Shown here: one piece after another, positions 1,061 through 35,177 of the stretch
Layout of the letters: the number at the start of each line of letters is the position of its first letter
How positions within the stretch are numbered: position 1 is the first letter of the stretch
Assembly: GCA_038087875.1 (NCBI GenBank)
Contig: CM075990.1
Location: 9,610,001 to 9,674,000 of the forward strand
Origin: Malacoraja senta
Lineage: Eukaryota
Direction of reading: 5' to 3'
Length of the DNA: 64,000 nt
Program-made: the position numbers and the translations under genes
The notes under the pieces: generated by a model
Seen by the model: only the letters and a program-made list of their open reading frames with translations
The model's database searches: none
What the model was told of the DNA's origin: nothing

Positions 1061-3274
1061 ACCTGGCTAGCAGCATGGTGCACCTACAAATGTTCTGCAG
1101 TTCCCAAGGCAACTCCAACAGAATCTCCAAACTGCAGTCTCTGCCACTAAGAAGGTGGTCGGTCAATGGAAACTAAATAAACCTACTTGGAATCACTCCA
1201 CTTGAATGGGACCTATCATACATTCCTTCAGCATTGTGATAGTAGCTTAACCAGCGCAGTTCAAGAAAGTGCTCACCACCACTATCTCAAAGATAAATGA
1301 GGATTGACAGTGCATACTAGCCCTGGTAATATGGCATAATTCCATAATAAAACTAAAATATTGACATTTGAGGAGGTCTTTATTGGCGACTTTACTTTTT
1401 TTAAGTGCTCCTGATGTCTAGATTGAAACTTTGAGCTGATTCCCCAGAGTGTATTAACATTCTTAATTAGTGTATCTGCCTTTTAATTAATTTAAAATAT
1501 AATTTATGCATTAACTTCATAGAGTGAGATGTTGTCAGCTGACACCAGGTAGATGTGGTTTTGGAAGGATATTCGTGGATTGTAAGTTTAAGGTGTTTTT
1601 TTCAATTCGCAAGATCTGGGGATTGCTGGTAAGAGGGACACTAATTACTCATCCGTAATTTTCTTTCAAAACATGATGTATTTCACTAGGATCCCAAGTT
1701 ATGACAGTGCCTATGGGGTGCCATTAACTATGATTTCCAGGATTTTAACCCAAAGGCAAATGTGAAATATGTTAAGTTTGAACTGATGGATCCCTTGTGT
1801 TAATGCTGTATGTGCCTGCTGCCAATGTCATGTGAGGTGATAGGGACCAAAGTTAGAGGCACTTCAAATTCCATGACATCAGCTGAGAATGAAGCGGAAT
1901 CAGCTGAGAATGAAGTCAGGTTGTAGATAAGGGTGACGAGTGGATAATTTTCAGATTCCAGGATCTGCAGTTTTATTTATTTTCCACTAGAAAAGTTGAC
2001 AAAACTAATAACTTTTATCAGATGGGTTAAAAATAAAGTTTTCTTCTTTGCTCTTTTGCTGAAACAATATATACTTTGATTTTGCAGTCAAATATTTTTT
2101 TAAAGTTGCCCTGAAAGTTCTATGTCAAGGCACAACAATTAGATGTACTATGTAAAGTTCAAATTAAACTTGTCATCAAGCTTACTGTGTCATCTTCCCA
2201 CTGTAAATCATTTTGTTGAAGGTGCTAATTTCAAGTTTTTATCAGTATTTCAGCCAGTTGGTTCTTGTTTACGCATGAGTTTCATAACTAAGTGCAGGGA
2301 AGTCACAATGCAATCCATTCCAGGGATCCCCAGCTCTGAACAGGAACATTTCCAGGTGGGGAGATTTTGACAACTAAATTCCTATAAGCAATAAAGCACA
2401 AAAAAACCTCACATCCTTGGCTCTCAAAGTAGAGGAAAACATAGAGGAAAGAAACTGATACGCAAACCTCAGAGAGAAAGAAATTAAGGTTACAAAGTGA
2501 CGTCAGCCAGTGAAAATAGGATGTGTCTCTTAAAAAACACTTATGGTTGCTGCGCCATGAGTGAGAGAAACGGTTTCTCAATACTTACTGGGGAATGGTA
2601 TACACGCATTCCCGACAAGTTAGTGCCTTAAATAAACTGTGTGCGGAGAGATAATGCATGTGAAATGACAGCCAAGCGCAGTGCCTGCAATGTGTGGACC
2701 GCCTGCAATGACACCTGTCATTGAACCGATTGCTATTTTCGGGCATTGAGTAAGTTGGGATTTGCCTTCAGCTCTCAACTCGGCGAAGTAGCAACGCAGG
2801 ATCACAAAGACAGACTTTTGCACATCGCGGGCAATGCAGGGCAGTTTTTAGCAGCATTGATCATTCTGTAGGTTGAGAAAACCATACAGGGAAGACTCAA
2901 CTGCAATTAGAAGCCACATCCTGTGAGATGTCTTAGATTTCAGTTTAATATTAGTATTTATTAACGTTGATTCTGAACCATGAGAGTCTATTGAGAGAAA
3001 TAAAATTATAGCTGACCTGTGCTTCCATTATTTGGTAATGTCTGATTATTGTGCAAATATTGTCAGGGAGTCACACTGATTGAAATAATTGTCATTTAGT
3101 TATCAGAAAATAAGTGATTGTAAACAACAACTCATAGAGCAAGTCTACACCACTTGGCCCGTTAAGCCAGCTCAGTCAGTGATCTGCCAATCTTTGGCAG
3201 GTTGCAGTCAGTATGGACAAGCTATTATTTTACATCAATGAAAGGAAGGTCAGGGAGTTATCGTTGTCTAATAC

Positions 3275-3510: not shown

Positions 3511-6294
3511 AACTACATGGTCATGCCCTACAAGATGACAATCACAGGGATCATTGACCTTTCTTTTTATCTGTCATAAAATGCACACGCTGTTATTTCC
3601 AATGACACTAATTTCTTCCAAACAATCTTGATAAGATTGATACTTTTTTAATAATTGAGATTTATATGCATAGTCAGTGTGATTCATCTACATTGTCAGC
3701 AATAATTGCGCTTTGCACAAGTGAACTTGTTCCATTGCACATCTTCTCACAAAGCTTCCTCTGAGTATCGGGGTCCAGTATGAAGTTTGATCCAATATTA
3801 ATTCTCCAATCAATTCATCAAGGTCATTGCATTGCTGATTATGGGAGTTTATTATGCATATTTTGGCAGCTGCATTTCCTAAGTTACAGAAGCGCATACA
3901 CTTGGAAAGTATGTCAATGATTGTAAATCACTAAGGCTGTGACAAGTACTGGTGGAATGCAAGCTCTTCCACTATTAAATGCTACAGTGCAAATCTCCTC
4001 ATTGTCCCTGTGAGTCTTACACCACAAATATTTTCTTTACCATGCCAATTGGGCCCACGAAAAGTGCTTTGAGTTTCACACTAGTATTGGAGATTCCAAA
4101 ATATATTGCACTTAAATCGAGAAGATAGATTGGATTAAATTAGTTTGTATTCCCTTTTGTACATTAGATGGAACCATAGAACTAATGCATTACATAAGGA
4201 GGCATTTAGCCCACCTAATTCTACCACTAGGCCCTTCTCCAGAAACTTGCACATTTGTCTCCACCAAATATCCCCTCTTGCAGGTCACGATGAAGCATGC
4301 TTCCCACCACATCTGCAGGTAATGCATTGCAGATTCTAATTGCATGTTGCATAAGTGTTTTTTTGTCAATGTCTCTCCATTTTTGTTTTTGCTGTTACCT
4401 TTAGTTTTCAATCACTCTATCAAAGCCCCCCCCCCCCCACCCACTCTGTTCATATCCCTCATCATTTTTTAATATGTCAATCAGCTTCCTCCAAAGAAAA
4501 CAGTCTTTTCTTAGGTAGACAAAAGAAAACAGCCTTTTCTTGTCTCTCCATGTAACCATAGTCCCTCATCTCAGGAACCAAACTCGTTAATCTTTTGTGG
4601 ACCTCTTTGACATCTACCTGTGAAAATCTTGTCCCTGAACTGCAGCAGCTTGGGGGATTACTTAGTTTTAAGATCACAAGATTGAAGTTTATGAAGCACA
4701 AATGCCGGCCTAATTTGTTGATATTACTTGGAATTTCATGCTGGAAATGAGCGAAACGGTTAATGTTTATCTGATGAATGGTCATTGAACTAAAACATAA
4801 AATCTATTTCTCTTACCACAGATACTGTCGTGCTAATTATTGACAGCATTTTTTGTAATATTTTGTATTTCCAGCATCTGCAGTGCTTGGCTTTTAAAAT
4901 TTAATGCTGCACAGCTAAAAGATTACAAGGAGGGCCCTGACCCAAACCATCACCTGTCCATTCTCTTCTGATTCTAAATGTTAACTGTCCATTCCTTCTA
5001 CAGATGCTGCCTAACCTCCTGAGTTTGTTTTGTTATGTACTAGCCACCAATCATCTTGACATGCTGTTCAATTGTCATAGTAATACAGCACAGAAATGGC
5101 CCATTTAGCCCTCTAGATCCATAGTGACTGTTTGCTCATCCACACTAATCCCATTTCCCCTCATTGGGTTCACATCCTTCTGTGCCTTGCCTAGTCAACT
5201 GCCTCTCTATGCCTCTTGAACACAGTGCTGGTATTTGATTCGACCATCTTCTCTGGCTTCAGATATCAACTACTCTGCAAAAAATATTGGTCGGACCTTA
5301 TTTCAGTCCTATTCTGGACATGTTTTCCTAATGCACTGCTTCACAAACAAGAGTCACCTTTTGATATCTGACTCACTATTGCTGTTTAAGCAAGAGCAGG
5401 CTATTCAGCAAAGGCATTGCGGCTAACCTCTGTGTAATCCCCACCCAATAACTCATGGCGTCAAAATCAGGATTTGGACAATGACAAATTTTCACTGCTG
5501 CAATGCCAGGAGTTGTACAGCTCCTATAATCAGCTATCTAGTGGCATTATCCAATAAGTCACCCACATATAATTGTCTTCGTTGTCTTTAGCTATTTGAA
5601 TCTGAATCTGCGTTCTACATCCCAATAATTTTGTCCAATTCTTTTGGTCATCTCTATACTTTTGGTCATCTCTATACTTTTCGAGGCATTTTTCTCTGCT
5701 GTTACTGGATTGCAAGGTTGATGTTTACGGCGGACATTGGGACATGAGGGAAAGTAGGACACCTTGAATAAATAGTTGATTTCTTTTTCACCTGAGAAGT
5801 TTTGGGGCATTTGAATCTGCCTTTAAACAAGTCAACATTCTGTACTGAGTTTCTTCAGTGTAGATGGGATTTGAAGACACTTACTTGTAAATGGATATTT
5901 AAAAGAACAGTGATTTATAAGTGTGCTGGTAGCTTTTGTACACAAATTGTTAGCTGCTAGTTTCTGAGTAGGATTGACTTCACCTCCAATTACTGACCTT
6001 AGTCATGTTGACCTAATATTTCTTCTTTCAGGGTTATTGGGTAAATTCAGCACAAATTCAGCAAAAGTTTCAGGTGTGATTGTGTCCAGCTTAGGGTTTT
6101 GCTCCAAACTGGTTGCATATTGTCAAGTGCAAAGATTGGGCATGGACCAGCACAATTGTACAGTTGTTTGTGTAATTTATAAATATTTTTTTGTATATCC
6201 CTGGTATATTTACGATGTGGCTTCATTAACAAAGCAGAAAATGTATTTTTACAAAAAATATTTTTTTGTCAATCTCTTAACCTGAGACACAATT

Positions 6295-6980: not shown

Positions 6981-7132
6981 GTGCGGAAGCGAGGGAAGGC
7001 TTGTAGAGGCGGGCTACGTGAGAATGATATCCTCGTGACCATCAATGGAAGATCTTGCAGTGGAATTTCCCATGCAGATGCCATGAACATCATAGACTCT
7101 TCAGACGGGACTCTGCGCATCTGGGTCAAGAG
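6981..7132 (+). CDS. SYNPO2L: Synaptopodin 2-like, internal exon encoding the C-terminal part of the PDZ domain
   Basis: ttccag|GTG acceptor and AG|gtacta donor, 152 nt, phase 0 to 2. Encodes VRKRGKACRGGLRENDILVTINGRSCSGISHADAMNIIDSSDGTLRIWVKR, a typical PDZ segment. The upstream exon with the PWGF motif was not found in the window. Confidence 0.9.
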
Positions 7133-7900: not shown

Positions 7901-8799
7901 GATTTCGTGCAGCCCGGCAACTGGCAGCTTTCAATCTGAGACCAGCCCGGCCACCGCCCCCTGTGAACGGAGCCAAGAAACTTCAAAAGTGCCCGGGCTA
8001 ATGCGGGAGCCCCCCAGTGTGAAGCCAGAGGCGACCCGCGGCACCAGCAGGCTCCGGGCTCAGCCCGAGTGTTACACCTCGCCCCCGGACAGCGAGGCGT
8101 ATTACGGTGAGACAGACAGCGACGCGGATCACACGGCCAGCGAGAGGCAGCGGAGGCAGAAGAAGCGTTGGCCGGGTCCCAGGGCGCCAGTGCGAGGATC
8201 GGCGGACGAGGCGTCGGAGCAGAGCGAGTACGACAGCGCTCCGGAGCCCGTGTGGAGCGACTGCCGCTCCCCTCTGAACCCCCTGTCGCCGGAACCAGCA
8301 GCATCCGCCTGTCTGGATCATCCCAGCCTCGCCCAAGGGGCAATCCCGAGGATGTTTCAGCCCAGGAAGGTGGAAGCCAAGATTAATATCTGGCAGCCCA
8401 AGGTGGAGATGGCTACTTACCCCAAGCCTGGTCTCGCCCACACTATCCTCACCGCCAGCAGCCACGCTCACCCCACTCCCTGTTACCCTACCACCAACCC
8501 CAACTATCCCAACTACCACCCCAACACCAACCCCAACTATCCCAACACCTGGTCTGCCCAGTCCAGCGGCGAAGATGTCCCTCTGCGTCAGGGTATCCTG
8601 GGCACGTCGGAAACTGACAGCGGCTTCCAGGAGGTACCTGCCCAGGCCGGCTCACCTGAGCAGAAGCTGCTACCGACCGCCAGCCTGCCCAGCTTGCCTG
8701 GCCTGAGGGGGACACAGCTGGTGCCCATGGTGGGCCCAGTGAACAACCCCGTGGACGAGGTGCTAATCACCACCTACAAAGAGAAAGCCAAGCAAGCCA
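7901..8799 (+). CDS. SYNPO2L: Synaptopodin 2-like, internal exon
   Basis: cttctag|G acceptor and A|gtaagt donor, 899 nt, phase 2 to 1 and compatible with both neighbours. Contains SYNPO2L-type motifs SPPDSEAYYGETDSDAD and LVPMVGPVNNPVDEVLITTYKEKAKQA. Confidence 0.92.
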
Positions 8800-9475
8800 G
8801 TAAGTTTTTTTTAGTTACCTTCTAAGATAGCCTCAAATAATTTTAAACCTCCGATGCTCTGGGCTTTTCTGATGTGTTCAATGTGCTGCTATTAAGGGGA
8901 ACATGAGAGGTTTAGAGGATATGAGGTAAACTCTCTGAAAAGCGTGTCAGTTGCTGTCTGTTACTTGATACTCTGTGTGATCTTATGGTCAAGACTTGAA
9001 AACAGTTGTTTAAACATACCCATGAAAGCTTCGTGCATTTATATATATTTTTTTCGAATTTACTGCAGTAGTGCTATCCTTTAAAGCTTTCGAATAAAAC
9101 AAAGTTCTATTAGAAACATCTAGCAGAAAAATGGATTACCTTGGGATAATTATAGGGTGGGATGGATGTAAGTGTTGTTCTCAGGTACATACAGGTTCCA
9201 CTGTATTGGTGTGACAATGGTTTAATATAGCAACCCTTGTCAATGAGATTTCTAGGAAGAGACCAGAAAACTTTGGAAGTAAGATTTGGTGATCAAGTCA
9301 CTGGCGATAAGAACGATAAAGTAGGGTCATAAGGTTAAGGGCATTATAGGGAGTTTTAGATTGCTAGATTGTGATGGCTGCAAGATGTGTAGGGATGGTG
9401 GTAAAGGGAATGAGAGAGCATGGTGTCAGAAAATCCAAGGTTGGGCTCAGGAAATTGAGGCTTTAGTAAGGGTGT

Positions 9476-9595: not shown

Positions 9596-10039
9596 AAGGC
9601 TTGAGGAAGTTGCTTCCAGTATTGAAATGCCATTGAAGAGAGTTGAGGATAAAGAGGATTTTTTTTTTGTCTAACATTCATGAATTGCTGACACTAATGA
9701 CCTATTTAAACTCCAGCATTTAAAATTAAACCTGTCTTAAATTATATATGGAGACAAGAATTATCCTCTTAATATTGCTTACTGCCACACTTTGCAGCCA
9801 CCGTCTTTTTTCCACTGGGGTCAATTTATAGATCTAAAGTATATTCAGCTTTTGACCATGTTTACTTGACTTTTGAAACAATGTTTTCTTGCTTATCCCA
9901 CAGTTATGAGTATGAAAAGTATTTTAATGACATCACTGCCTGAGACTTTGACACATTTCATTCTTGTGTCAATCGGCACAATTTTTCTTTTAGCTTTACT
10001 TGTCTGAAAAAAATCTCTTGAAGGCCGGTTTGAGCGCAG

Positions 10040-10160
10040 ACAGATGCTTAAACTCATCACACAACTAGTTGGTATGTAATGGGTAAAAATAGTCAAACGG
10101 ACAGAAGTTCTCAACCGTCCTTTTGTCTGGTCTGACAAGGGGAGTAAAAGGCGATAAGAG
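10040..10160 (+). promoter_or_regulatory. Candidate muscle promoter of the short SYNPO2L isoform
   Basis: E-box CAGATG 10041-10046, MEF2-like GTAAAAATAG 10083-10092 (1 mismatch to consensus) and GATAAG 10153-10158, directly upstream of the candidate alternative first exon. Confidence 0.45.
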
Positions 10161-10199
10161 AACTTGGCAGACTTAAGAGTCTTGGGCTCACTCCAGTTT

Positions 10200-10323
10200 A
10201 TGAGTGATTACAGTGTCTATATGGAACTGAGGACACAAAGTAATACTCCAAAGATTAACAGAATGCAGAGATCACAAACTGAAGAACCAGAAAAGAAAAC
10301 CAGCAAGCATCAAGTTTATGCAG
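10200..10323 (+). CDS. SYNPO2L: Alternative first coding exon of a short, PDZ-less SYNPO2L isoform (CHAPb-like)
   Basis: ATG at 10200 (or 10221), open for 41 codons: MSDYSVYMELRTQSNTPKINRMQRSQTEEPEKKTSKHQVYA. CAG|gtattt phase-1 donor joins 16821 to give ...VYAELHRSES, echoing the ...FYAELQRAES junction recalled for the mammalian short isoform. Confidence 0.7.
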
Positions 10324-12939
10324 GTATTTGAATGTGTACATACTTTTAAAGTGTTAGCTAATTTTACTGTGAATGGTCTACAATTAATTTTTGTTCTATC
10401 CTTAAAAGTCTTACAATTGAAATTAGTTTCATGCCTGTAACCCAAGGTAAGATGGAAGGTCAACATTTCAGCACCAACTTATTTTATTCAATGTGTTTTA
10501 AATATTTACTGCAAGAGTATGGCAATTTCAGTTTACTCCTTTCCACAGAAACAAATACTCAAAAGGTTGTTAGCCTTGGTATATCTTACACAGTAAAAAT
10601 GATAGATGTACAGTTTCAATACCAATTGAACCAAAGATGTTTGCTTTGCAAATCATCACTTTGTGACTGCAAATATTTACTCAGCTAGACTCTGGTGGTG
10701 TGGGTTTTTCTTTGAGAACGTAAAGAAATTATCTGGCTTTATTTTTCAACCCTGGGCATGTTATTGATAGTGAACAGTGACATTTTACAATGTTTCAGGT
10801 CTCCAGTGTTTACAACTGGTGGGAGAAGAGGGAGAGGTCCTGTTGCTGGTGGTTGGTTGTAGCAAAATTAACATGAGCTCCTTAAATTTTTGAAGAGCCC
10901 TTTTTTCCCCCCAGTGTTTCATGCTTTAAAATAGACTTTTTTTGCCAAAGTGAAATTGAATTATGATAACTTCTGGGTGATATTATGTAATTCCAGAACT
11001 TACACTGTGGTTTTCTTGAAGTGATTCACCCCTGCGTGCCTGAAACGATTTTTGCATCCGTTTTGCACAGGATGCAGCAATCCCAGCCCAATGCCCCTTT
11101 TGGAACATTGCAGGAAAAATTGGACTAAATTGTCCTGGGAACAACTCTTGGGACAATGATGTCTTAATACTGCAGATTTTGATTAGGACACTTTGGCCTT
11201 ACACCCACACTGCACTGATATACCCCATGCTCCAAGACCTTGGTCCGAAACCTCTCTGATCTCCAAACTGTGCTTCCGTCCCGTTGGTCCGGGCCAACAA
11301 GACAAATGCCATGAACCCCCAAAGTGATGTCAACCCCTACACTTCAAATTGGTTTATCTTGTGCGATTTGGTGAACCCAATGATCCCATGAGATCCTTGG
11401 GGGGGGGGGGGGTTCCACTTATTCTTCCCCTCCTCTCCACTGGCCACTCATCTGATCATTATACCCCAATTCTGGGCCTCTGTCCTTTCTTTGCCAACCC
11501 CTTCTACCGGTCCTGATTTTTGCAGAATCCCTTCCTGGTCACATTCCTTGCCTTGACCCCTGGCCCGGAACATGCTCAATTCCAGGTGATATCCAATTAC
11601 AAAATCCTACCACAACCAACCATCTAGCATATCCATCTGGGTGCAATAAAATTTCCAGGCAGCAGTTTTTATTGGTTAGGTTTCCATTTCATTACCATTC
11701 ATGATAAACTAAATCTTTATTACAGTACATATATATTAATCTTTTTCTCTCCCAGGAGGGGTCCGGGCCCCTCAAATAAGTTTGTCTCTTGAATTGGCTT
11801 AAATATTCAATTGATGCATTTGAGCAGACTCCATGATTGTTCTTATACCCTTTTTATACCAATGTTATAGAAAGAGCAACTCATTAGCTGATCAAAAAGA
11901 AACATTTAATATTTCTTCAATAGAAATGATCAAAATGAAATCAGCTGAACCTATAGCAAATGGATATGTTTCAATATCCTAGTAATATATCAATAGTTAA
12001 TAAATGCAATTGTTTTTCCCAAACACGTCAGCACTTAACACATTGATACAATGTGCAATTCATTGAGGCTGGAATGTTACCCTTTCTCGCAGAATAAATT
12101 GAGATTACCTCATAGAAGGTCAGCTGGAAAAATAACAGCAACATTTTAAAACATCGATCAGAAATGTGTTTTGAGGATACTTCCAATAAACTTGCTGTGT
12201 AATAATTTTTCCTCAATCATCTGAAGATTCATTAATGTTAGCCTCCAGTCTGTCAACATTCTTCTGCAATTTTGGTCATGCGTTTTTTTGACATCTGGGC
12301 AGCATTTATTGCCCATCCTTAATTGGCCTGGAGAAAGAGATGATGAATCACTTTCTTCATTCAATGTTATCTTTCTTGTGAAGGCTGCTGAGTCCCTGAT
12401 AGTAATTACCTTCTTGAATGTTGCTGGAGTCATGTTCATTCACCTGCCTTGCACTTTGTCAATGGTCGAAAAGTGTTGAGGTGTTAGTGAGTCACCCACT
12501 GATAATACATAGCTTTGGACCTGCCTTTGTAGTCGCCATCCTGAAGTGGCTGATCCAGTTCAGTGAAGACACAAGGAACTGCCAATACTGGTTTACAAAA
12601 AAAAAGGACAACATGTGAAGAAGGCCTTGACTCGAAACGTCAACTATCCATGTTCTCCAGAGAGGCTGTCTGACCCACTGAGTCACTCCAGCACTTATTT
12701 TTTGTCTTTTTTTGGTCCAGTTTATTTCCTGACTAATGCTGACCACCAGAAAGTAGATGACGTGGAACTCAGAAATAGTAATTCTATTGAATATCAAGAA
12801 GTGGTTAAACACTCTCTTGCTGGAGATGACCATTGCCTGGCACTTCTGTGGTACAAATGTTACCTGCTACTTATTAGCTCATGCTGAATGTTATCCAGCT
12901 GTGTTTCAAGCAAGGAGGTATAAACTGGTCATCTTTTTT

Positions 12940-15100: not shown

Positions 15101-15437
15101 CCGCAGTGGTGTAGTTGGCAGAGTCGATGTCTTACAGTGCCAGAGACCCAAGTTCAATCCTGTCCTCAGGTGCTGTCTGAGGAGAGCTTGCATGTTCTCG
15201 CTGTGAATGCATAGGTTTTCTTCAAGTGCTCCAGTTTCCTCCTATGTTCTAGACAGGCAGGGTGGAAATTGGGCACAGGAAATTGCCCCTTGTGATAGAT
15301 TCTGGGAGCACTGATAAGAATTTGGGGAGAATAAATAAAATCGATTAATGCAGTCTATGTGTAAAAAGGTGGCTGATGACCAACAAGGAACTCAGTGGGC
15401 CGAAGAGGCTGTTTCTATGCTGCATTCTCTATGACTC
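15101..15437 (+). mobile_element. tRNA-derived V-SINE (HE1-like)
   Basis: A-box-like TGGTGTAGTTGG, B-box-like AGTTCAATCC, V-domain-like core (gcatgttctc...ggttttc...gctccagtttcctcc) and CR1-like tail. Confidence 0.65.
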
Positions 15438-15828: not shown

Positions 15829-16820
15829 CCCCAGTATCAATGCAGCTTCTGAGGAAGGCAGCCATCAAGGATTTGGGTCCTTTGCCATTAGGATAACCCA
15901 TTGTTAATTGAGATGAGCTTGTGAAATATAATCCCATTTTAATTTGGGATATACTGCAGCCACTTTGTGCTCAACAAGGGATCACCAACATAATAACCAG
16001 GTAATCGACGTAAGTGAAGTAGAAAACGCTAGAGTTCTGATGAACCTGAAATATTAACTCTGTTTCTCTCTCTTCAGATACTACCTGACCTGCTGAGTAT
16101 CTCCAACATTTTCTGTTTACATTTACATTTATTCAGCATTTTGAGTTTCTATTTTGTTTTTTTACTGGTATTATTTGGGTGATCAATATTGCCCTGGGCA
16201 CCAGGGAGAATGCCATGTCCCTTTTTCTATGACCACCTGAGAGGGAGAAGGTTTATGACCTCATTTGAAATTCTGCAACAGAGCCGTATCCCTGTGGAGA
16301 ACCAGTCTAGTTTTTTGAGCTTTGATTTTGGGGTGGTATTTGTACCCAGAATCTGACTCGGAGAGCACCAGCTCACTGAGAGTTAATATCAGGCAGCAGA
16401 ATCGGAGGAATCTCCACGCTGTCTTACGCCATTACTTTGTTCCCCTCTGATGGTAATTCTCCATAAGGGCAGAAGATTCAAACCACGACACTCCTTTTTT
16501 CCACTGTCCTGGACCGAGATACTGTCCAACACTTCACAAACTGAGATTACAACAAGCATTTTGTTTAAAACAGATCTTTCATCACTTCTCAGTTAATGTC
16601 TTCCATATCACTTTCCATTTGTGATTAAAACCAATGTAGCATACCATGAAGAATATGTGAGGGATTGTTGTTGTTTTGAACAAGGCTGATTAAGGAAAAT
16701 ACCCTTTGGAGCTGCGGGATTATTTTGTTACACTTGGAATCTCGGATGTATAATTCTCTTGTGTTCACAGTAATGTTTCAGAAGCTTATTAGTTTATTCC
16801 TTTGTGTTCTGACATTGCAG

Positions 16821-19750
16821 AGTTACATCGGAGTGAAAGTGTGCAGGAGAAGCAAGCGAAGGAGGCCAGGACAAAATGCAAGACCATCGCATCTCTCCTC
16901 ACCTCTGCACCAAACCCTCACTCAAAGGGGGTTCTTATGTTTAAGAAGCGCCGTCAAAGGGCAAAGAAGTACACCCTCGTTAGTTATGGAAGTGTAGACG
17001 AGGAGAAGCAGAGTATGGACGAGGACGGGGAACTGCTGCCTACCAGTGAGTCTGAATTTGACGAAGAGGCGTTTTCTGATGCAAAAAGTTTGACAAATCA
17101 GTCAATGGGATCAGACTGGGACAGTTCTTACCTGGACATTGAAAAGCCCAAATCTGAACCCCATGGTCTAACTGCAACCAAAGGGAAGGGTGTTATATTA
17201 TTTGAACATCAGAGACAACGAGCAAATGAATATGTATTGGAGGAACCTCCAATTCAGACACAACACAATCTACCAATGAAACCAAAGACAGAGGCTGAAG
17301 TGATGAGGTGCAGCACAATGAATGGAGTCCCTGCCTGGTCCAGGAGTACGACTGCGTGTGCTGGGAATCCAGCCTCGGACCCATTGAACTACTATTCAGA
17401 AATGAATCTGTCGCCAATAGTACGTGCAGAGACCAGTTTGCCAAGGCCGAGTGGGCAGCACCATTCACAGCACATCGTACAAGGTCCCCCTGGCCTACCT
17501 GGGGTGGCAAATTGGACAGCAAGACCATTTACTCCAGGTTGTCAACAGAGCCATGTGAGTCCTGTACACTCTGTCTGTGCTCCAGTGCTATATCGACAAG
17601 GTACTACGAATACAGCTCCTGTCAAACCCTGGGAACAAGCTGCTGTGCAAAACAAACCCACAAAACCTTTCTCACCTCCAGCAGCGGCAGTCGCCAGGCC
17701 AACTGTGAATGCCATCCCTCAACCTGAACCAAAGAAAGCTTCAGTGCCAATGAGAATGGGAACCCATTATTTGCCAGCAGCTGTTTTAATATCAGCACCA
17801 CCACCACCACCTGCTGTGATGCCACATCCACCTCTTGTGATGTCACCACCACCTGCTGTGATGTCACCACCACCTGCTGTGATGTCGCCTCCACCTCCTG
17901 TGATGTCACAACCATCTGCTGTGATGTCAGCTCCACCTCTTGTGATGTCACCACCACCTGCTGTGATGTCACCACCACCTGCTGTGATGTCACCACCACC
18001 TGCTGTGATGTCACCACCACCTGCTGTGATGTCACCACCACCTGCTGTGATGTCACCACCACCTCCTGTGATGTCACCACCTGCTGTGATATCACCTCCA
18101 CCTCCTGTGATGTCACCACCTGCTGTGATGTCACCTCCACCTGCTGTGACGTCACCACCAACCACAGCCACTTTACCATCGTCTACAACAATGACAACAG
18201 AATGCACAGCGATGCCAACACTGGCCGCGGTGACCTCGCCAAAGCCGGCGGTGATGGTGTCATCAATCATGGCGATGTCACCACCATGCGCAGCAATGTC
18301 AGCAGATTGTACCATGGCATCACCACCAGCTGCAGTGATGTCACCACCACCGGCAGTGATGTCGCCGCCACCTGCAGTGATGTCACCACCACCATTGATG
18401 ACGTCACTATTCACAGCAACTCCATATTCGCCACCTCAGGCTCCGGTCACCAGCACCGCTACCTTTCGCATTTCCTCAACATTGCTGCCACAGAAAAGGA
18501 GCGAAGCCCCTCCTGAAGCCGTAGTGAACGCTCCTTCCATTGCGAGCACGTCATCAACAGCTTGGACATCCAACCAGCCATCTGAGAGCTTGGCCACAAG
18601 AGAGCAACGAATTTCAGTGCCCGCTTCTAAAACTGGCATTTTGCAAGAGGCACGTCGCAGAAGCACCAGGAAGCCGATGTTTACAAAGACTGAACAGAAA
18701 AAAACCTCACCAAACCCTGAACTTCTTTCCATGGTACAAAACCTGGATGAAAAGAAGCCAGATCATATTGGAGCAGGATTTGAATCAGGACCTGAAGAAG
18801 ACTTTTTGAGTCTTGGTGCCGAAGCTTCTAATTTTATGCAGTCTCAGGCACGCAGGCAAAGTATACCTCCTCCAGTAGCCCCAAAGCCTCATTTAAAGCC
18901 TCAGTTAGTTGGCGGTTGTTATCCGGTGGTGAATGGAACCGATACATCAGCAACCCTGCAGTCGAAAGGAAAAGGGGCAGAACTTTTTGCAAAGAGACAA
19001 AGTCGCATGGACAAATTTATTGTTGATTCAGTGCCAACCCACTCTTCCCAGCCAAGAGGACCATCTCCCACTCCTTCCCTTCCTGCTACATGGAAATATT
19101 CTCCCAACATCCGGGCTCCACCACCAATCGGTTATAACCCCATTTATTCCCCATCATATCCATTAGCAGCCAGCAAGTCCCAAACAATCCCCAAAGCAGA
19201 GAAGAAGTGGAGGCCAGGAGGGAACCAAAAGGTGGGAATAAAAGCCATTGATTTCATGAGACGTCAGCCTTATCAATTAAATCCGGGCATGTTCAGTTTC
19301 GATGAATCCACCTTGAGATCACAAGGGTGGTCAGGATGTGCTCCAACCACGCCACAAGGCCAACAATCCTTTATCTCCACAAAGCAAGTCCCTGTGAAGA
19401 CAGCAAGAGCGTTCGAGATCAGACGCTTCTCAACCCCAGTGCCGACCATCACTCCCACAGTTATTGCCCCGCGGTCAGCCACCACACTCGCTGAACCTGT
19501 GTGGATGTCGGCGCCAAACTCCCCCCCACCGGTATCAGCCAAAGTATCTTACAGCAATGGGCTGGCTCACCAACACTGGAGAGCAGCTGGAGACAGTTCG
19601 GAAGTGGCCTTTGAACCGTCAGTTCTTCAATTCCCGTCCAGGGAAGATATGCAAAAGAAGCCATCGGTCCCCACCCCTAGACCGAGGTTCTCAGCTGTGA
19701 GAGGTGGAGGCGGTGGACATACATGGAGACCTGGTTCAATCCAGGAATGA
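16821..19750 (+). CDS. SYNPO2L: Synaptopodin 2-like, large terminal coding exon
   Basis: ttgcag|AG phase-1 acceptor, open to TGA at 19748-19750. Synaptopodin-family blocks KCKTIASLLTSAPNPHSKGVLMFKKRRQRAKKYTLVS, PTSESEFDEEAFSDA, KTGILQEARRR, SPNPELLSMVQ, GPEEDFLSLGAEA, GKGAELFAKRQSRM, WKYSPNIRAPPPIGYNP and PRPRFSA..WRPG. Adjacency to MYOZ1 supports SYNPO2L rather than SYNPO2. Confidence 0.95.
17800..18400 (+). repeat. Coding 21-bp minisatellite (CCACCTGCTGTGATGTCACCA; PPAVMSP heptad)
   Basis: About 17 units at 17800-18160, a degenerate spacer, then 3-4 more units at 18320-18400; a few 18-bp units; frame preserved throughout. Confidence 0.95.
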
Positions 19751-26685: not shown

Positions 26686-27178
26686 AGTCATAGAGTGATA
26701 CAGCGTGGAAACAGGCCTTTTGGCCCAACTTGCCCACACCAGCCAACATATCCTAATTACACTAATCCCACCTGCCCACGATTGGTCCATATCCCTCCAA
26801 ACCTGTCCTATCCATGTACCTGGCAAACTGTTTCTTAAAAGTTGGGATAGTCCCAGCCTCAACTACCTCCTCTGGCAGCTTGTTCCATACACCCACCACC
26901 CTTTGTGTGAAAACGCTACCCCTCAGATTCCTATTAAATCTTTTCCCCTTCACCTTAAACCTATGTCCTCTGGTCCTCGATTCACCTACTCTGGGCAAGA
27001 GACTCTGTGCATCAACCCGATCTATTCCTCTCATGGTTTTATACACCTCTATAAGATCACCTCTCATCCTCCTGCGTTCCAAGGAATAGAGTCCCAGTCT
27101 GCTCAACCTCTCCCTATAGCTCAGACCCTCCAGTCCTGGCAACATCCTCGTAAATCTTCTCTGTACCCTTTCCATCTT
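26686..27178 (-). mobile_element. CR1 LINE (HER1-like) ORF2 C-terminus plus 3' tail, nested in an older CR1 fragment (about 26470-27470)
   Basis: ORF 26762-27175: MERVQRRFTRMLPGLEGLSYRERLSRLGLYSLERRRMRGDLIEVYK...TRGHRFK, the canonical CR1 C-terminal domain; tail actctatgactat. Confidence 0.92.
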
Positions 27179-27536
27179 CTTTAAATCCTTCCCCTCTCAC
27201 CTAAACCTATGCCATCAGTTTCCATCTGCCTACCCTGGGGAAAAAACAGTGACAATCTACTGTGACTATCTATGCTCTTCAGAATTTTATAAACCTCTAT
27301 ATCACACATAATCTTCTCCAAAGCTTTACCAAAGTCCATTTAGACGTTGCCTGCTGCCTTGCCCTCATGAATCCTCTGTTACCTCCTCAAAAAACACAAT
27401 CAATTTTGTGAGATATGGTTCCCTCACAAAGAAAGCCATGCTGACTATCACGAATTAGTTCTTGCCTTTGCAAATGCAGATAAATCCTGTCCCTCAGAAT
27501 CCCTTGCAAAAATGTACACACCACTGATGTTCACCT

Positions 27537-35007: not shown

Positions 35008-35177
35008 GCGGGGCCGAGATTAACTTCGGGAAGAAGATCAGCATCCCTCGGGATGTGATGTTGGAGGAACTGTCCCTGCTGAAGAATAAAGGGTCGCAGA
35101 TGTTTAAAGAGCGGCAGCGCAGGGTGGAGAGGTTCATCTATGAGTCACATCCCGACGTCTTTCACCCAGATTCGATG
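35008..35177 (+). CDS. MYOZ1: Myozenin-1 coding exon 2
   Basis: aacag| acceptor; GAEINFGKKISIPRDVMLEELSLLKNKGSQMFKERQRRVERFIYESHPDVFHPDSM (calsarcin signature); ATG|gtaggc donor. Confidence 0.96.

Follow-up and report, generated by a model that had tools for sequence, protein, structure and literature searches.

The SYNPO2L locus of the skate Malacoraja senta raises the question of whether a cartilaginous fish possesses a separate first exon, with its own promoter, for a short isoform lacking the PDZ domain. The gene SYNPO2L (CHAP) is among the loci linked to atrial fibrillation and heart failure. The C-terminal part of its product has been described as associated with the Z-disc and actin, and disease phenotypes in mouse and human models are affected by the ratio of the long PDZ isoform to the short one. 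The long isoform CHAPa (977-978 aa) is encoded by four exons and the short PDZ-less isoform (mouse CHAPb, 749 aa; human, 753 aa) by two, the first of which is unique to it; the mammalian long and short isoforms have distinct transcription start sites (TSSs) and promoters, and reporter assays have validated the promoter of human isoform 2 (PMC5716575, PMC11477451, PMC13759299). Embryonic or stress-biased expression of the short isoform is known for mouse and human only (PMC5716575, PMC13759299), and zebrafish and chick have been described as expressing only the long form (PMC5716575).

We analyzed 64,000 nt of M. senta DNA (GCA_038087875.1, contig CM075990.1, 9,610,001-9,674,000, forward strand), hereafter the window, in which a sequence-only reading had proposed a CHAPb-type first exon for a PDZ-less isoform. 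Comparison with other vertebrates makes it likely that the region ~9665-10329 is an internal muscle-type alternative promoter together with a first exon, orthologous to that of CHAPb/SYNPO2L isoform 2 (B). The proposed exon agrees with the known short isoforms in its location, its phase-1 junction and its YA/E end, and its ATG, frame and donor are conserved in cartilaginous fishes.

The SYNPO2L gene and the candidate exon

Judged by its protein matches, the host gene is an orthologue of SYNPO2L (synaptopodin 2-like). The protein search with the terminal-exon product returns elasmobranch synaptopodin 2-like proteins as top matches (E = 0), that of Rhinoraja longicauda being the closest, and exons 2 and 3 of the window align to Pristis SYNPO2L. 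Exon 1 is located upstream, outside the window. The PDZ residues are encoded in exons 1 and 2, and Pfam finds no PDZ domain in the terminal-exon product. The terminal exon begins with AG TTA CAT, is contained in a long open reading frame (ORF, 16802-19750) and ends with a stop codon at 19748-19750. In the long isoform, the junction between exon 3 and the terminal exon reads ...KQA-K-LHRSES.

Features of the SYNPO2L locus in the window (all positions are those of the window)
Feature	Positions	Strand	Content	Basis
Long-isoform exon 2, second half of PDZ domain	6981..7132 (start approximate)	+		Pristis alignment
Long-isoform exon 3	7901..8810	+	phase-1 donor a/gtaagt	Pristis alignment, direct reading
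Upstream part of conserved module, putative promoter/enhancer	9665..10040	+	A/T-rich and other invariant stretches	
E-box	10041..10046	+	CAGATG (CANNTG)	invariant in 6 chondrichthyans; CAGTTG at matching snake site
Mini-exon (rival exon end)	10044..10071	+	9 codons from ATG (MLKLITQLV) + G; donor GTATGT at 10072-10077, phase 1	
MEF2-like/TATA-like element	10083..10092	+	GTAAAAATAG	six-species and snake comparison
Candidate exon ORF	10200..10323	+	41 codons + 1 base	direct reading
ATG 'M8'	10221..10223	+	MELRTQ...	TATGGA conserved, snake included
Conserved coding core, ATG 'M22'	10263..10323	+	ATG + 19 codons (MQRSQTEEPEKKTSKHQVYA) + G	
Splice donor of candidate exon	10324..10329	+	GTATTT, exon end CAG/GT	GT invariant in 6 chondrichthyans and snake
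Shared acceptor	16815..16820	+	ttgcag	direct reading
Terminal SYNPO2L exon, both isoforms	16821..19750	+	975 codons past split Glu/Lys codon + stop	

The candidate exon sits inside the 8-kb intron between the end of exon 3 and the terminal exon. The ATG at 10200 opens 41 codons (MSDYSVYMELRTQSNTPKINRMQRSQTEEPEKKTSKHQVYA), which are followed by an extra G at 10323 and then by GTATTT. This G and the AG of the terminal exon form a Glu codon, giving the in-frame junction ...HQVYA-E-LHRSESVQEK... that continues to the stop. The donors at 8810 and 10323 are both in phase 1, so both fit the acceptor at 16821. The 41-codon ATG exon with a phase-1 donor joining the terminal exon in frame, as put forward by the sequence-only reading, can therefore be read directly from the DNA. 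The predicted product sizes of 1017 aa (ATG 10200) and 1010 aa (ATG 10221) correspond to the earlier estimate of about 1010-1017 aa, to which a third start at 10263 adds a product of 996 aa. The 41-codon length describes the skate ORF correctly and does not describe its ancestral extent, as the ATG at 10200 is specific to skates and the conserved core comprises 20-34 codons. Within this single sequence, the pattern TAYGCNGGT (Tyr-Ala-G/GT) occurs three times in the window, with 1.75 expected, and ~0.1 is expected on the plus strand of the intron. Taken in one sequence, the coincidence of ORF and donor is weak and not better than chance; it is conservation across species that lifts it above chance.

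Other features of the window accompany the gene. Inside the terminal exon, a long array of PPAVMSP-type heptad repeats (~17800-18400, plus strand) fragments BLAST alignments into numerous overlapping segments and would likewise disrupt the assembly of transcripts from short reads. At ~35.0 kb (~35024-35155, plus strand), a conserved exon encodes a myozenin/calsarcin-like sequence, ...EINFGKKISIPRDVMLEELSLLKNKGSQMFKERQRRVERFIYE. The exon probably marks MYOZ1, which would then follow SYNPO2L on one strand; this arrangement is also that of the snake locus and of mammals, whose MYOZ1-SYNPO2L neighbourhood has been described (PMC11477451). On the minus strand, an ORF resembling the C-terminal part of a reverse transcriptase (26813-27190) represents a LINE-type repeat unrelated to the alternative exon; retroelement copies at the snake locus resemble it (tblastx, 41% over 126 aa).

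Conservation in cartilaginous fishes

The window was compared with the SYNPO2L loci of Rhinoraja, Pristis, Narcine, Callorhinchus and Rhincodon (whale shark). A tBLASTn search of the peptide in other sharks and rays, suggested by the sequence-only reading, yields matches at the orthologous site, between exon 3 and the terminal exon, in 5/5 loci. Peptide identity is 83% (aa) in Rhinoraja, 63% in Pristis and 46% in Narcine, and the matches in Rhincodon and Callorhinchus have E values of 7e-4 and 2e-3 in a small database. The in-frame ATG at 10263 and the GT of the donor are kept in 6/6 species. The donor is preceded by TAT-GCA-G in 5/6 and by TAT-TCA-G in the whale shark, so that the peptide ends with ...KHQVYA-E in the skate, ...KHQIYA-E in Pristis, ...HHIYA-E in Narcine, ...NRHIYA-E in Callorhinchus and ...KHLSYS-E in Rhincodon.

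The whole intron is alignable among batoids. Against Callorhinchus, a chimaera, alignment within the gene is limited to the coding exons, to a single block that precedes exon 2 and, within intron 3, to positions 10007-10365 only (blastn, E 5e-17). In shark and chimaera, alignability stops a few tens of bases past the donor. Among the 100-nt windows of the four batoids, 9807-9906 is the most conserved (0.95 vs an intron mean of 0.67), and 10062-10161 and 10259-10358 rank second and third (0.91 and 0.90). Short stretches are retained individually as well. A.AATGC.GA, which contains the ATG at 10263, is kept in 6/6 species, TATGGA (~10221) in all except Narcine and Callorhinchus, and TTGGTATGTA (10067-10076) in all except the whale shark. 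GGGTAAAAATAGTCAAAC (10081-10098) is also kept, apart from a few variants: Callorhinchus has TGG instead of GGG, the whale shark has TAAT instead of TAGT, and Narcine shows a gap of 4 nt.

The three in-frame ATGs differ in their distribution. Among the six cartilaginous fishes, the ATG at 10200 is found only in the window and Rhinoraja. The ATG at 10221 is present in 5/6, with indels that shift the frame in the whale shark and Callorhinchus, and is replaced by ATA in Narcine. It is probably the ancestral 'ME' start; an 'ME' start is common to the skate M8 form, frog, marsupials and an upstream in-frame ATG of the snake. The ATG at 10263 has an A at -3 and is invariant in 6/6, and the 61 nt from it to the donor contain neither an indel nor a stop in any of the six. 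In the four batoids, the stretch from the A/T-rich element to the in-frame ATGs contains no out-of-frame ATG; in the whale shark and Callorhinchus, one precedes the conserved ATG.

In the six-species block, parsimony changes at codon positions 1/2/3 number 14/16/19 and pairwise dN/dS is mostly 0.4-1; neither test gives a clear coding signature in the candidate peptide, and the conservation could therefore equally act at the DNA or RNA level. By these measures the peptide is weakly constrained and nearly free to vary, and conservation concerns the ATG, the reading frame, the Tyr-Ala end and the donor.

Searches of protein collections and annotations gave the following picture. The 41-aa peptide has 0 matches among 1.84 billion representative proteins (phmmer), a result that is uninformative since short isoforms cluster under long ones. 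The first 330 aa of the terminal exon retrieved short forms from carp, frog, eel and Logan assemblies and no skate transcript-derived fragments. No CHAPb-type model is among the NCBI Gnomon isoforms examined from Mobula, Scyliorhinus, Chiloscyllium and Latimeria, which do contain other N-terminal variants. In three Mobula and two Latimeria models, an alternative first exon is annotated that joins exon 3 or exon 2 (MGIAGIMGIKQE-RMTSSPATG being one instance), and tblastn finds no counterpart of these variant peptides in the window. Fish SYNPO2L may have more than two promoters, as the human gene has three TSSs.

The upstream module and the short isoforms of bony vertebrates

Conservation extends upstream of the exon. 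Taken with the exon block, the region 9665-10040 has 64.6% identity to the whale shark locus over 856 nt (E 6e-79). The sequence-only reading had pointed to MEF2-like, GATA and E-box motifs here, and these fare differently: the E-box and the MEF2-like element are present and conserved as far as the snake, whereas the GATA motif (GATAAG, 10153-10158) exists only in the two skates (the window and Rhinoraja) and was rejected as a conserved element.

The core TAAAAATA of the A/T-rich element is invariant in the six chondrichthyans and the snake, and the base that follows is G in 6/7 and A in the whale shark. Compared with the MEF2 consensus YTA(A/T)4TAR, both GTAAAAATAG in chondrichthyans and ATAAAAATAG in the snake match at 9/10 positions, position 1 not being a pyrimidine. 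The element GTAAAAATAG is a putative MEF2 site and could equally be a TATA box. The distance of this A/T-rich site (TAAAAATAG) to the donor is 219-249 nt (239 in the skate, 219-240 in the other cartilaginous fishes and 249 in the snake). In the window and in each of the six loci, the composite motif CAGNTG-N30-50-TAAAAATA(A/G) has a single occurrence, which in every case lies at the orthologous site and on the strand of the gene. No other occurrence exists in the 577 kb scanned, and shuffled sequences give 0.34 in total. The snake keeps the E-box (CAGTTG) but not the ATG embedded in it, which argues that the hexamer is a putative factor-binding site rather than a start codon.

Two further conserved tracts were observed. 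An acceptor-like tract at 9880-9903 (plus strand; ttttcttgcttatcccacag) lies 168 nt upstream of the donor at 10071, inside the most conserved batoid 100-nt window. A cassette exon of 168 nt between cccacag at 9903 and this donor was rejected, as it would be interrupted by a stop in frame and the whale shark lacks the AG; we read the tract as putative promoter or enhancer sequence rather than exon. A second deeply conserved non-exonic block (2433-2812, plus strand) is situated in the intron upstream of PDZ exon 2, with 69% identity to the whale shark (E 3e-49) and 65% to Callorhinchus (E 6e-30). It contains GTGAYGT.AGCC (TGACGTCA in the skate; CRE/AP-1-like), TGAAAATAG, CATTCC/GGAATG (MCAT/TEAD-like), CTTAAATA and a CACCTG E-box, and by these motifs it looks like a putative muscle enhancer.

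Short isoforms were retrieved from several bony vertebrates. A search with the N-terminal region of the snake protein gave five candidates, two of which are marsupial X2 isoforms. In these marsupials (Macrotis/Dromiciops), the first-exon peptide METFK...ERQDQPYAE is joined to LQRAES of the terminal exon. The corresponding pairs are MPCCPGVDATIKHLDQPYAE, ending ...KHLDQPYAE, and LNRGES in the snake Crotalus adamanteus, MEHCD...STDNLYAE and LHRSES in the frog Staurois, and MRSFTSPGEVEHERHIYAE and LHRGES in grass carp X2. A Logan contig of 903 nt encodes ...NTVYAE followed by LPRGES; it is too short to hold the intron and is thus presumably cDNA. The exon end ...[IVLP]YA/E is common to the chondrichthyan exon and the marsupial, snake, frog and carp isoforms, so the 'YAEL' junction that the sequence-only reading had given for mammals is present in the retrieved proteins. 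The chondrichthyan M22 form, MQRSQT..., also resembles MRSFT... of carp. The many partial bird proteins beginning with AELHRHES were rejected as evidence of a short isoform, as AE also results from reading through the acceptor (ttGCAG/AG).

Among bony vertebrates, the promoter DNA compared was that of the snake only. In the snake locus, the annotated alternative exon occupies 6001-6058, with the terminal exon ~3.7 kb downstream, and is preceded by CAGTTG (5763), TCCATCACC and ATAAAAATAG (5808-5817), in the same order as in chondrichthyans. TATGCAG/GT is common from chimaera to snake. An nhmmer profile of the chondrichthyan block has no significant match in the 54-kb snake locus; the evidence for homology with bony vertebrates thus consists of short motifs with their order and spacing, together with the exon/peptide end.

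Interpretation of the conserved block

The only annotated chondrichthyan short isoform has a different exon end. This Ensembl protein of Callorhinchus (A0A4W3HDB7, 'Synaptopodin 2-like a', 874 aa) starts with MTMSVVKLF-E-LHRSES, and its first coding exon, at 15183-15209 of that locus, is the exact orthologue of the skate mini-exon, whose ATG at 10044 lies inside the E-box. Like the skate candidate, it is a PDZ-less two-exon model with a start in the same conserved block and a phase-1 splice to the same acceptor; unlike the candidate, it uses the mini-exon and not the ...IYA/G donor 233 nt downstream. If the short isoform of cartilaginous fishes were generally built in this way, with ATG 10044 and the donor at 10071/10072 (MLKLITQLV-E-LHRSES, 985 aa), then 10200-10323 would be intronic or would end at a minor alternative 5' splice site. 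The use of this donor in the Callorhinchus annotation favors such a structure, as does the retention of the ATG, the 28-nt length and GGTATGTA in 5/6 chondrichthyans, and dual donors have a precedent in another human SYNPO2L first exon, which has two alternative donors 80 nt apart (PMC11477451, PMC13759299). However, in the whale shark the third codon is a stop and GCT replaces GGT, so that the GT donor is lost, and the snake has neither the ATG (its E-box being CAGTTG) nor GGTATGT. No comparable peptide exists among the retrieved bony-vertebrate short isoforms, all of which end with ...YA/E and match the downstream donor, and the invariant E-box and A/T-rich element would come to lie within exon and intron instead of in a promoter. 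We consider the mini-exon unlikely to be the general first exon; the donor at 10071 could be either an alternative 5' splice site of chondrichthyans or their actual one.

The block could also be a purely intronic muscle enhancer (E-box and MEF2) serving the upstream promoter of the PDZ isoform or MYOZ1, with the ORF and GT unused in cartilaginous fishes. It would fit this role that parts outside the ORF (10041-10160 and 9807-9906) are conserved as strongly as the ORF, that no codon-position bias is seen, and that the isoform sets and protein searches inspected gave neither annotation nor transcript-derived support in elasmobranchs. Yet an enhancer needs neither an invariant GT after TAT-GCA-G nor an invariant in-frame ATG 61 nt upstream of it, nor freedom from indels and stops over a divergence time of ~400 million years. 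Moreover, the homologous ...YA/E end is an annotated exon boundary in bony vertebrates, and conservation in shark and chimaera ends a few tens of bases past the donor; a pure enhancer is in our estimate quite improbable. Lower still is the probability of a chance ORF beside a chance GT in a slowly evolving intron, an explanation that agrees with the YA-G/GT pattern being no rarer than expected in a single sequence and with the alignability of the entire intron among batoids. It would have to account for the only block of intron 3 reaching the chimaera, for windows among the top three in batoid conservation, and for exon ends matching annotated ones in four bony-vertebrate lineages, and we regard it as highly improbable.

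For an internal promoter with a first exon, the reading that we prefer, transcription in the skate would start downstream of the E-box and the A/T-rich MEF2/TATA-like element, the 5' end of the exon (TSS) probably lying between ~10110 and 10200. Translation would start at 10200 (skate-only), at 10221 (the old 'ME' start) or at 10263 (universal in cartilaginous fishes). The exon would end at 10323 in phase 1 and be spliced to the common terminal exon, and the predicted product of 996-1017 aa would lack the PDZ domain and the exon-3 region and retain the whole C-terminal part. MEF2 and bHLH factors may bind here, and any embryonic or stress-related regulation is putative.

The two-promoter design of SYNPO2L probably dates to the jawed-vertebrate ancestor, as the sequence-only reading had supposed: if the short-isoform exon, its ...YA/E junction and the E-box/MEF2-like core are indeed conserved from chimaera to amniotes, the design is ancestral to jawed vertebrates. 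More tentatively, at somewhat below even confidence, we suggest that the layout of the internal promoter itself (E-box, ~40 nt, TAAAAATAG, ~220-250 nt, ...TAT-GCA-G/GT) has stayed nearly fixed since that ancestor, from chimaera to snake, while the peptide drifts freely, in which case the view of fish and birds as having CHAPa alone would be wrong. Should this layout be real, the A/T-rich element and the E-box would represent the ancestral switch for the 'fetal' PDZ-less isoform, and the same switch would probably lie behind its re-activation in stressed mammalian hearts. What is new here is the cartilaginous-fish orthologue of an already known alternative promoter and first exon, and its value is for evolution and annotation. 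It would add a missing first exon and isoform to the SYNPO2L models of skates, rays and sharks, reduce the candidate regulatory sequence to a core of a few dozen invariant positions, and run counter to the description of non-mammals as expressing the long isoform alone (PMC5716575).

Compared with mammalian CHAPb (isoform 2/B, CHAP753), the skate exon has the same position as a unique first exon between exon 3 and the last exon, the same phase-1 splice to the common terminal exon and the same PDZ-less product, and it shares the junction ...YA-E-L(H/Q)R.ES with the marsupial Gnomon X2 proteins. It differs in that its peptide, outside the 'ME' start and the terminal ...YA, is almost wholly dissimilar, and in that skates have an extra lineage-specific upstream ATG. 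With the isoforms of grass carp (X2), Staurois and Crotalus it has in common the exon end and the short length (19-34 codons), and the H-I-Y-A/E end of carp recurs in Callorhinchus and Narcine. The carp, frog and snake isoforms are database gene models, whereas the skate exon is unannotated in the records examined and its use is inferred. As in Crotalus, the E-box, CCATCAC and TAAAAATAG follow each other upstream in the same order and spacing. An E-box paired with an A/T-rich MEF2 site is typical of classical promoters and enhancers of striated muscle. The skate module resembles them in having CANNTG ~40 nt from the TAAAAATA core, both invariant across the sampled jawed vertebrates, and departs from the MEF2 consensus in its first base, which here is G or A.
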